A DNA stretch of 63,802 nucleotides, filler included, from Pelomyxa schiedti (GCA_020536535.1; 13 parts of 13 records of this genome joined end to end with filler, not necessarily neighbours in it), one strand, 5' to 3'. Positions 55,091-57,488 are shown, counted from the whole stretch's first letter. Notes: generated from the letters alone by a model not told the origin. Numbers and translations: made by a program.

Positions 55091-57175
55091 AAGGCGTATC
55101 ACTGGACGGTATATGCCGGGCCCTTGTGCACCCTAGCTGCGCCTGTAAACATCTGACGCTTAGATGTACGCCTTTCGATGTTTGGCTTACACTCACAAAC
55201 AAACAAGGTAAAAATATTGGTGCTGAGGGTGCCGCCAGCGTCGCGCGTGCACTTTCGTCAAACAACTCACTCGTGTCCCTGCATCTTGGTGGTGTGTCAG
55301 TTGGCACGACTGCCCACCCAATCACTCATTCCCCCTTTCCAACTGACACACACTCACAAACAAACAAGGTAACAATATTGGTGCTGAGGGTGCAGCAAGC
55401 ATTGCACGTGCACTTTCGTCAAACAACTCACTCGTGTCTCTGGATCTTTGTGGTGTGTCAGTTGGCACGACTGCCCACCCAATCACTCATTCCCCCTTTC
55501 CAACTGACACACACTCACAAACAAACAAGGTAACAAAATTGGTGATGAGGGTGCAGCAAGCATTGCCCGTGCACTTTCGTCAAACAACTCACTCGTGTCT
55601 CTGGATCTTTGTGGTGTGTCAGTTGGACTGCCACACACTCATTCCTCCTTTACTGCAACCAATTGACACACTCACCAAACAAACAAGGTAATAATATTGG
55701 TGCTGAGGGTGCAGCAAGCATTGCCCATGCACTTTCGTCAAACAACTCACTCGTGTCCCTGCATCTTGGTGGTGTGTCAGTTGGCTGCCCAATCACTCAT
55801 TCCCCCTTTCCAACTGACACACACTCACAAACAAACAAGGTAACAACATTGGTGATGAGGGTGCAGCAAGCATTGCATGTGCACTTTCGTCAAACAACTC
55901 ACTCGTGTCGCTGTATCTTGGTGGTGTGTTGGCACGACTGCCCACCCAATCACTCATTCCCCCTTTCCAACTGACACACACTCACAAACAAACAAGTTAA
56001 CAACATTGGTGCTGAGGGTGCAGCAAGCATTGCCCGTGCACTTTTGTCAAACAACTCACTTGTGTCTCTGGATCTTGGTGGTGTGTTGGCACGACTGCCC
56101 ACCCAATCACTCATTCCCCCTTTCCAACTGACACACACTCACAAACAAACAAGTTAACAACATTGGTGCTGAGGGTGCAGCAAGCATTGCACGTGCACTT
56201 TCGTCAAACAACTCACTCGTGTCTCTGGATCTTCATAGTATGTCAGTTGGCACGACTGCCCACCCAATCACTCATTCCCCCTTTCCAACTGACACACACT
56301 CACAAACAAACAAGGTAACAACATTGGTGATGAGGGTGCAGCAAGCATTGCACGTGCACTTTCGTCAAACAACTCACTTGTGTCCCTGCATCTTTATTGT
56401 GTGTTGACTGCCCACCCAATCACTCATTCCCCCTTTCCAACTGACACACACTCACAAACAAACAAGTTAACAACATTGGTGCTGAGGGTGCAGCAAGCAT
56501 TGCCCGTGCACTTTCGTCAAACAACTCACTCATGTCCCTGTATCTTGGTGGTGTGTGTCGTTGGCCGCCCAATCACTCATTCCCCCTTTCCAACTGACAC
56601 ACACTCACCAAACAAACAAGGTAACAATATTGGTGATGAGGGTGCAGCAAGCATTGCATGTGCACTTTCGTCAAACAACTCACTCGTGTCCCTGCATCTT
56701 GGTGGTGTGTCAGTTGGCTGCCCAATCACTCATTCCCCCTTTCCAACTGACACACACTCACAAACAAACAAGGTAACAAAATTGGTGCTGAGGGTGCAGC
56801 AAGCATTGCCCGTGCACTTTCGTCAAACAACTCGCTCGTGTCCCTGAATCTTTATAGTATGTCAGTTGGCACGACTGCCCACCCAATCACTCATTCCCCC
56901 TTTCCAACTGACACACACTCACAAACAAACAAGTTAACAACATTGGTGCTGAGGGTGCAGCAAGCATTGCCCGTGCACTTTCGTCAAACAACTCACTTGT
57001 GTCTCTGGATCTTGGTGGTGTGTCAGTTGGACTGCCACACACTCATTCCTCCTTTACTGCAACCAATTGACACACTCACCAAACAAACAAGGTAACAACA
57101 TTGGTGATGAGGGTGCAGCAAGCATTGCACGTGTGTTTTCATCAAAAATTTCACTTGTGCCCCCGCATCTTCACA
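55091..57175 (+). CDS. RI/NLR-type (28-aa) leucine-rich repeat protein fragment, one LRR per exon
   Basis: 13 exons of exactly 84 nt (starts 55208, 55369, 55530, 55688, 55840, 55997, 56154, 56315, 56467, 56621, 56773, 56934, 57092), consensus xNNIGAEGAASIARALSSNNSLVSLxLx, all with phase-1 GT...AAG introns. Confidence 0.92.
55208..57175 (+). repeat. Tandem exon+intron array, unit about 152-161 bp, 13 copies
   Basis: Both exon and intron are near-identical between units; two intron loop types occur. Confidence 0.95.
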
Positions 57176-57488
57176 GTATGGTCATTGGTGTGTGCCACTC
57201 GTTATTCCTCTCTTTTCCAATTAACTCACAAACAAAGGGAGCCAAAGAGGGCCCAAGGGGGGTGCAGGTTCCATAGAGACAAGTACATTATTCCTGTGGT
57301 TTTCCTGGTTNNNNNNNNNNNNNNNNNNNNNNNNNNNNNNNNNNNNNNNNNNNNTTAATTAATTAANNNNNNNNNNNNNNNNNNNNNNNNNNNNNNNNNN
57401 NNNNNNNNNNACGGAACCTGGTGTATGGGCTTTTGCAAAAAACATAATTTTGACGATGCAGATAGTTGTTTTACTTTTCTTTACTTTC

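Follow-up and report, generated by a model that had tools for sequence, protein, structure and literature searches.

LRR genes assembled from exons of fixed length and a single phase have been described in Tetrahymena, with 90-bp exons (PMC6564038), and in the ROCO genes of brown algae, with 72-bp LRR exons (PMC3341825, PMC11378527). These reports attribute both kinds of array to unit duplication and unequal exchange, with variation at ligand-facing residues, and brown-algal transcripts with differing sets of LRR exons are described there (PMC11378527). The Pelomyxa schiedti array analysed here resembles them in its fixed exon length and single phase, and apparently also in unit duplication, unequal exchange and ligand-facing variation; it differs in its 84-nt exon, which encodes a 28-residue ribonuclease-inhibitor (RI)-type LRR, in its phase 1, and in an inverted repeat running from the donor to the likely branch site of its introns, of which we found no mention in the accessible portions of the same three papers (PMC6564038, PMC3341825, PMC11378527).

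Introns of this construction have been described elsewhere. The introners of Amoebophrya (PMC7789003) and the symmetric (stw)introns of Hypoxylaceae (PMC8469720) are likewise short, with 5' and 3' parts that are reverse complements and are predicted to form a hairpin, and in their older copies the symmetry decays while excision continues (PMC7789003, PMC8469720), a course to which that of the array introns may be likened. Both families are, however, dispersed in unrelated genes and mark intron gain, whereas the copies described here form one tandem array; the 3' arm of the array introns sits on a branch-like motif rather than at the 3' end, and the direct repeats at their borders amount only to GGT, in contrast to introners. 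In Dscam exon 6 and in Drosophila intronic stems, complementary boxes near splice sites can loop out or choose exons (PMC2724269), which is conceivable here too. Dscam nevertheless uses one docking site and many selectors in a mutually exclusive manner that is conserved across species, and the long-range Drosophila stems were validated by compensatory mutations (PMC2724269); each array intron carries both arms, and their pairing, predicted from sequence, displays no covariation. Finally, the zipper stems of yeast (PMC12350175) and the long introns of diplomonads and Trichomonas (PMC6679479) leave donor and branch site single-stranded within long introns. The array stem is of a different kind, as it spans intron bases 1-13 and the CTGAC motif of introns that are very short.

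The window is a stretch of 63,802 nucleotides of P. schiedti DNA (GCA_020536535.1), filler included, in which the array occupies most of the readable piece 55091-57310. This piece is dominated by a tandem repeat, for which TRF reports a period of 161, 12.4 copies and 89% matches, and a higher-order period of 467 bp was also found in the array (Table 1). All 13 exons are 84 nt long, free of stop codons and in phase 1-1, opening with the last two bases of a codon and closing with the first base of the next; each encodes one ribonuclease-inhibitor-type LRR of 28 residues with the form xNNIGAEGAASIARALSSNNSLVSLDLG. The locus combines one LRR per exon, a fixed exon length and a single symmetric intron phase, as one-LRR-per-exon arrays do. 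Protein searches were made with the individual exons rather than with the joined spliced protein; 12 of the 13 matched Pfam LRR_6 weakly, with scores below the cut-off, as expected when single repeats are searched one by one, and the nearest solved structures (PDB) are ribonuclease-inhibitor-like LRR proteins.

Exon variation is confined to 16 of the 84 columns, mostly the x positions of the LxLxxN strand together with three helix positions. These are the solvent-exposed positions of the LRR, at which variation is usual for ligand-binding LRR domains. Exons 6 and 12 differ by 1 nt, yet the intron haplotypes next to them differ, and the array is a mosaic. In four exons, those starting at 55997, 56154, 56467 and 56934, the acceptor AG is followed by TT instead of GT, so that the junction codon specifies Val rather than Gly and the GGT otherwise found at both intron borders is lost.

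The array has distinct margins on both sides. TRF places its start at 55189, inside the end of intron 0, an intron of the same gene that contains no 13-bp stem and folds no better than its shuffles (z +0.27). At the other end, the last reading frame is closed by a TAG at 57274-57276, and the decayed intron copy that follows exon 13 likewise has no stem (z +1.18). The C-terminal tail may now be encoded by this former intron.

Table 1 Features of the LRR array, in coordinates of the window.
Feature	Position	Strand	Description	Value or basis
Tandem array	55189..57175	+	161-bp units of one 84-nt LRR exon and one short intron	TRF
Exon 0, 3' end	55091..55108	+	Upstream LRR exon cut by the edge of the piece	Phase 1 reading ends ..GVSLD + G (LRR end motif); GT at 55109
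Intron 0	55109..55207	+	99 nt; only its last ~21 nt belong to the repeat	Only the A/C-rich tail is common with array introns
Exon starts (13)	55208, 55369, 55530, 55688, 55840, 55997, 56154, 56315, 56467, 56621, 56773, 56934, 57092	+		
Intron 1	55292..55368	+	Haplotype A, 77 nt; perfect 13-bp stem, 55292-55304 with 55339-55351	-20.27 kcal/mol, z -5.27
Intron 2	55453..55529	+	Identical to intron 1; arms 55453-55465 and 55500-55512	Haplotype comparison, inverted repeat
Intron 3	55614..55687	+	Haplotype B, 74 nt; 3' arm C>T variant, 55659-55671	-20.7 kcal/mol, one G:U pair
Intron 4	55772..55839	+	Haplotype C, 68 nt; loop minus 9 nt, stem intact	-20.6 kcal/mol
Intron 5	55924..55996	+	Haplotype D, 73 nt; 5' arm minus 4 nt internally	-10.6 kcal/mol, z -1.98
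Intron 6	56081..56153	+	Haplotype D, as intron 5	Haplotype comparison
Intron 7	56238..56314	+	Haplotype A', starts GTATGT (G+3>A); one A.C mismatch	-14.07 kcal/mol, z -3.56
Intron 8	56399..56466	+	Haplotype E, 68 nt; 5' arm cut to the splice hexamer	-6.18 kcal/mol, z -0.80
Intron 9	56551..56620	+	Haplotype F, 70 nt; GT insertion and 1-nt loss in 5' arm	-18.8 kcal/mol
Intron 10	56705..56772	+	Haplotype C, as intron 4; perfect stem	Inverted repeat, haplotype comparison
Intron 11	56857..56933	+	Haplotype A', as intron 7	Inverted repeat, haplotype comparison
Intron 12	57018..57091	+	Haplotype B, as intron 3; 3' arm variant, 57063-57075	Haplotype comparison
Exon 13 and decayed intron copy	57092..57276	+	Most diverged LRR exon, continuing in frame through a decayed intron copy to TAG	ORF 57067-57276
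Exon-crossing inverted repeat	55445-55465 with 55500-55521		Crosses the 5' splice junction; likewise in unit 3	

Twelve introns of 68-77 nt, all GT-AG, separate the exons. Several lines of evidence argue strongly that these introns are spliced and that the exons are real: i) the intron haplotypes differ by about 11 indel events, all of them outside the exons (binomial p = 0.0003), ii) the exons are without stops and vary at exposed positions, and iii) in every intron the first AG after the CTGAC motif is also the intron's last AG, because the intron tail is devoid of G. The 12 introns resolve into seven haplotypes linked to one another by one or a few events each. Event counts were taken from pairwise alignments; a MAFFT alignment was set aside for the counting of structure pairs because it misaligned the shortened 5' arms.

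We also turned to sequencing data from one protist study, comprising three DNA-like runs of a single sample (X1-X3) and one single-cell RNA run. The RNA run provided two contigs, 57096-57291 and 57278-57310, both unbroken and unspliced, which could be DNA carry-over; it covers 57096-57310 only, with no contig on the array proper, and none of the runs contained a splice joint. The missing joints are no evidence against splicing, because contigs break at the repeats. Four linked differences from the window (57129 A>C, 57130 C>G, 57134 T>C and 57189 T>C) recur in runs X2 and X3 and in the RNA run, while the X1 contig, which starts at 57135 and spans only 57189 of the four sites, matches the window without differences; these linked differences point to a second allele or a very close paralogue. 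Wider searches for related sequences included a conserved exon 20-mer, for which 38 single matches in metagenomes proved on blastn to be due to chance, none being an LRR array, and for which the viral collection held 0 matches. A metagenome scan for the hairpin pattern likewise gave 0 matches, and the read-through ORF 56380-56844, which crosses three introns and served as a handle for gene calls on sister contigs, returned nothing.

The sequence-only reading had proposed that most of these introns begin with the same 13-mer and contain its reverse complement over CTGAC, about 17 nt before the AG. The complementarity is real, but "most" overstates it: the 5' arm GTGTGTCAGTTGG is exact in only half of the introns (1, 2, 3, 4, 10 and 12), carries one substitution (G+3>A) in introns 7 and 11, and is broken or altered by indels in introns 5, 6, 8 and 9. 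The 3' arm is located as proposed. It contains CTGAC, ends 17 nt before the intron's last base, and is exact (CCAACTGACACAC) in 10 of 12 introns; introns 3 and 12 instead have CCAATTGACACAC, in which a C>T change leaves a G:U pair, so that the second intron type indeed keeps its stem. Complementarity of this length is not common by chance. Allowing up to two mismatches, the 13-mer occurs 20 times on both strands against 0.38 expected, and the predicted folds of intact introns have energies of -20.3 to -20.7 kcal/mol (z -4.7 to -5.3), a stability reached by 0 of 200 shuffles. Introns 5, 6 and 8 fold like their shuffles (z -2.0 to -0.8). In intron 5, pairing with the unchanged 3' arm (55967-55979) is limited to the first 7 nt, and 45 of 200 shuffles of intron 8 fold equally well. 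Intron 9 keeps its stem with a bulge, because the extra GT meets an AC just beyond the 3' arm. The beyond-chance pairing holds for the founder intron, as the repeated copies are tandem duplicates and not independent observations.

Where the upstream exon ends in TTTGTG, the complementarity continues for another 6 bp, with these exon bases opposite CACAAA of the intron tail and a 3-nt bulge; a part of the complementarity thus arises from G/T-rich sequence on the left being matched by A/C-rich sequence on the right. Immediately behind the 5' arm, a GGCA..TGCC stretch (55305-55317) could form a small local hairpin in competition with the long stem, and intron deletions cluster in this quasi-palindromic stretch. 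Other identities for the intron were considered and rejected. The loop is not an inverted exon copy, local alignment scoring no better than shuffles, and a 3'-tailed mirtron is incompatible with a stem of 13 bp and a loop of 25-34 nt, as about 20 bp or more would be needed for Dicer. Searched for an Rfam family, snoRNA or miRNA, the intron gave no Rfam match at E up to 1.

The survival of the stem through a G:U change had been taken to suggest that the structure is selected, a claim that our event counts do not bear out. The change is a single event, and about one third of random substitutions would keep a pair. Of approximately six events in the arms, four break pairing without compensation and two keep it, namely the C>T change that yields G:U and the GT insertion that meets AC. 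The 12 introns of the array contain no compensatory double change, so the search for covariation ended with zero double changes, one G:U-compatible change and four pair-breaking events. Events are also unevenly distributed, with ~4-5 in the 5' arm and 1 in the 3' arm (13 nt each), ~7 in the 34-nt loop and 3 in the 17-nt tail. Within the 5' arm, positions +1 to +6 (the GTGTGT/GTATGT hexamer) are kept in 12 of 12 introns, while the bases from +7 to +13 are missing or changed in introns 5, 6, 8 and 9; these bases are the most changeable stretch of the whole unit and the sole half of the stem without another obvious job. We find no sign of selection on the stem, and its pairing looks inherited by copying, a judgement drawn from few independent events in one array of one species.

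These counts also bear on the proposal that the stem is a useful local hairpin. Among splice sites that all look the same, a link between a donor and the branch region of the same intron would mark that intron as a unit and favour nearest-neighbour splicing, the reverse of the outcome expected if arms compete across introns. Local stems do dominate introns 1, 2, 7, 9, 10 and 12 in the whole-array ensemble, and introns whose structure brings the splice signals closer together are known from diplomonads and a parabasalid (PMC6679479) and from yeast (PMC12350175). Introns of 68-77 nt, however, have no need of shortening; helpful stems of the known kind keep donor and branch site single-stranded (PMC12350175), whereas the array stem covers both, and 4 of 12 introns have lost or altered their stem while the flanking exons are intact. 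We consider a useful local hairpin unlikely.

A different pattern is seen in the 3' two-thirds of the introns. The 3'-most 52 nt (e.g. 55317-55368) are identical across the nine type-1 introns compared, intron 9 having been set aside for a 1-nt insertion. This invariant block cannot be ascribed to the stem specifically, because it takes in 22 nt of loop and the 17-nt tail. None of its 52 positions varies, against 6 of 28 third codon positions of the exons (p = 0.001), which points to homogenisation by unit exchange or to constraint by the 3' splice signal, and to exon differences being held by diversifying selection alongside intron uniformity.

A further possibility is that the inverted repeats act on the DNA itself, forming hairpins or cruciforms that promote slippage, unequal exchange or the shuffling of LRR exon cassettes. 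The mosaic of the array, in which the near-identical exons 6 and 12 adjoin different intron haplotypes, would fit such an activity, as would the clustering of deletions within or next to the 5' arm. Cruciform extrusion is disfavoured by loops of 25-34 nt, the very loop lengths of these introns. The 161-bp direct repeats would moreover be enough on their own for unequal exchange, as is proposed for the LRR arrays of Tetrahymena and Ectocarpus (PMC6564038, PMC3341825), and we regard a DNA-level role of the arms as very improbable.

Sister-unit contigs from the DNA runs provide a view beyond the array. Several of the many such contigs match its tail and exon and pass into unrelated or degenerate sequence exactly at the site of the 3' arm, with loose ends before 55352, 55366, 55524, 55823 and 56767; one of them, before 56305, retains CCAACTGAC without the following ACAC. 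These contigs, which display the 3' arm side of their units, suggest that the stem is not a general property of LRR introns in this genome.

So sharp a border also recalls a mobile element. The arms might, as the sequence-only reading also allowed, be the terminal inverted repeats of a miniature intron-generating transposon, an introner, that created or invaded the founder intron, an origin compatible with the explanation that we prefer below. The repeat is perfect over 13 bp with its 5' arm at intron base 1, the stem-loop forms a module of ~60 nt with sharp borders, and both the paralogous units and intron 0 diverge from the array exactly at the 3' arm border. Inverted repeats of 8-20 nt join the intron ends of Amoebophrya introners and also occur in some canonical introns (PMC7789003), and of 177 introner families, 72 carry terminal inverted repeats (PMC9860276). 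Set against this, no target-site duplication was found, ..TTGGTG to the left of the 5' arm and ACTCAC.. to the right of the 3' arm forming no direct repeat, although such a duplication could have been erased by the later duplication of the unit. The 3' splice site falls 17 nt beyond the 3' arm, tandem duplication accounts for all copies seen in the piece, and pattern scans of metagenome and viral contigs found no copy. An introner origin is, in our estimate, rather unlikely.

Given that the arms are nearly the same in all introns, the sequence-only reading had further put forward a model reminiscent of Dscam, in which donor arms compete for their own and for later 3' arms, and cross-intron pairing would carry a donor to a remote branch region and loop out in-frame LRR exons to yield combinatorial isoforms. 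The interchangeability of the arms holds in silico, but the Dscam architecture does not, as both arms are present in each intron. Any intact 5' arm is predicted to pair with any 3' arm at -21.8 to -26.1 kcal/mol, and the 5' arm of intron 3, taken with its next base, matches the 3' arm of intron 2 over 14 perfect pairs, with exon 3 in between. Adjacent introns can in silico also adopt a nested fold, the outer stem of which joins the donor arm of intron i to the 3' arm of intron i+1, the two remaining arms forming an inner stem that encloses the exon. Its energy falls within 0.3 to 6 kcal/mol of that of two local hairpins, and it is often the minimum-energy structure; it is at least as stable as the local hairpins for the intron pairs 1-2, 2-3, 3-4 and 10-11. 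When the whole 2.2-kb pre-mRNA is treated as an ensemble, introns 3 and 4 exchange partners, and the 3' arms of introns 5, 6 and 8 are largely free, that of intron 6 (56124-56136) being mostly free or paired elsewhere. All exons are in phase 1-1, so any skip would stay in frame, and alternative LRR-exon combinations are described for one-LRR-per-exon genes of brown algae (PMC11378527).

These predicted folds must be weighed against what is known of such pairing. A 3' arm is found in 12 of 12 introns and a usable 5' arm in 8-9 of 12, and with both arms in each intron a unique docking site is lacking. The own 3' arm is transcribed 25-34 nt after the 5' arm, before other partners exist, and this co-transcriptional order would kinetically favour local hairpins. 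Covariation is absent among the array introns, no spliced or skipped RNA was seen in an RNA run confined to 57096-57310, and the stem lies on splice signals, where in known cases it masks rather than activates (PMC2724269). The interchangeability and the nested folds arise because a hairpin was copied in tandem, and they do not imply a splicing outcome. A Dscam-like mechanism is therefore unsupported, and competition among arms as a source of isoforms is very unlikely. At least as doubtful is its extension, in which the interchangeable arms constitute a pairing network that sets LRR exon joining and draws many receptor variants from one gene, the broken 5' arms of introns 5, 6 and 8 freeing their 3' arms to capture upstream donors.

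Taken together, the explanation that we consider probable, albeit with appreciable doubt, is that a hairpin-bearing founder intron was amplified along with its LRR exon, and that the stem was inherited and is now decaying where splicing has no need of it. The gene piece would encode a protist LRR protein of the ribonuclease-inhibitor type, the LRR domain of which has presumably grown through tandem duplication, unequal crossing-over and gene conversion of the 161-bp unit. The founder intron would already have possessed the 13-bp inverted repeat, connecting its first 13 nt, the 5' splice site, to the CTGAC segment ~20 nt before the 3' splice site; the same partner-swapping arms would then be found everywhere because every copy inherited the founder's repeat. 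The parts that were kept appear to be those that splicing needs, i.e. the donor hexamer (GTGTGT or GTATGT), the 3' arm with its branch-like motif, and a tail that lacks G until the first AG is reached, while the remaining half of the 5' arm is probably eroding through small deletions. The stem itself would be at most a tolerated, mildly masking structure: lying over both the donor and the likely branch site, it must melt before U1/U6 and U2 can bind. In Drosophila minigenes, a donor is masked by stems that overlap with it (PMC2724269). Our analysis establishes the anatomy of the array, its haplotypes, the energies of the folds and the pattern of changes; splicing, the choice of the branch-point A, which may lie in CTGAC or in a CTCAC slightly downstream, the absence of a function and the origin of the repeat are what we infer here.

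In favour of amplification from a founder we count, besides the distribution of events described above, the stemless intron 0 of the same gene, the seven haplotypes and the absence of indels from the exons. Three findings pull the other way. A perfect repeat of 13 bp, lengthened in some units to 19 bp around a bulge, far exceeds what chance would give and calls for an origin; over its 3' two-thirds the intron shows less variation than the exons do at third codon positions, so that something homogenises or constrains it; and the nested folds that loop out an exon match the local hairpins in stability, which makes an effect on splice-site pairing conceivable.

If the stem merely rides along, the P. 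schiedti locus is one more rapidly evolving protist LRR array, and at the same time illustrates neatly how duplication in tandem may give the appearance of RNA structure conservation. Were the integrity of the arms to predict exon joining, the array would represent an RNA-pairing route to receptor diversity outside animals; and were the hairpin module a mobile intron-generating element, intron gain would be linked to the growth of an LRR domain.
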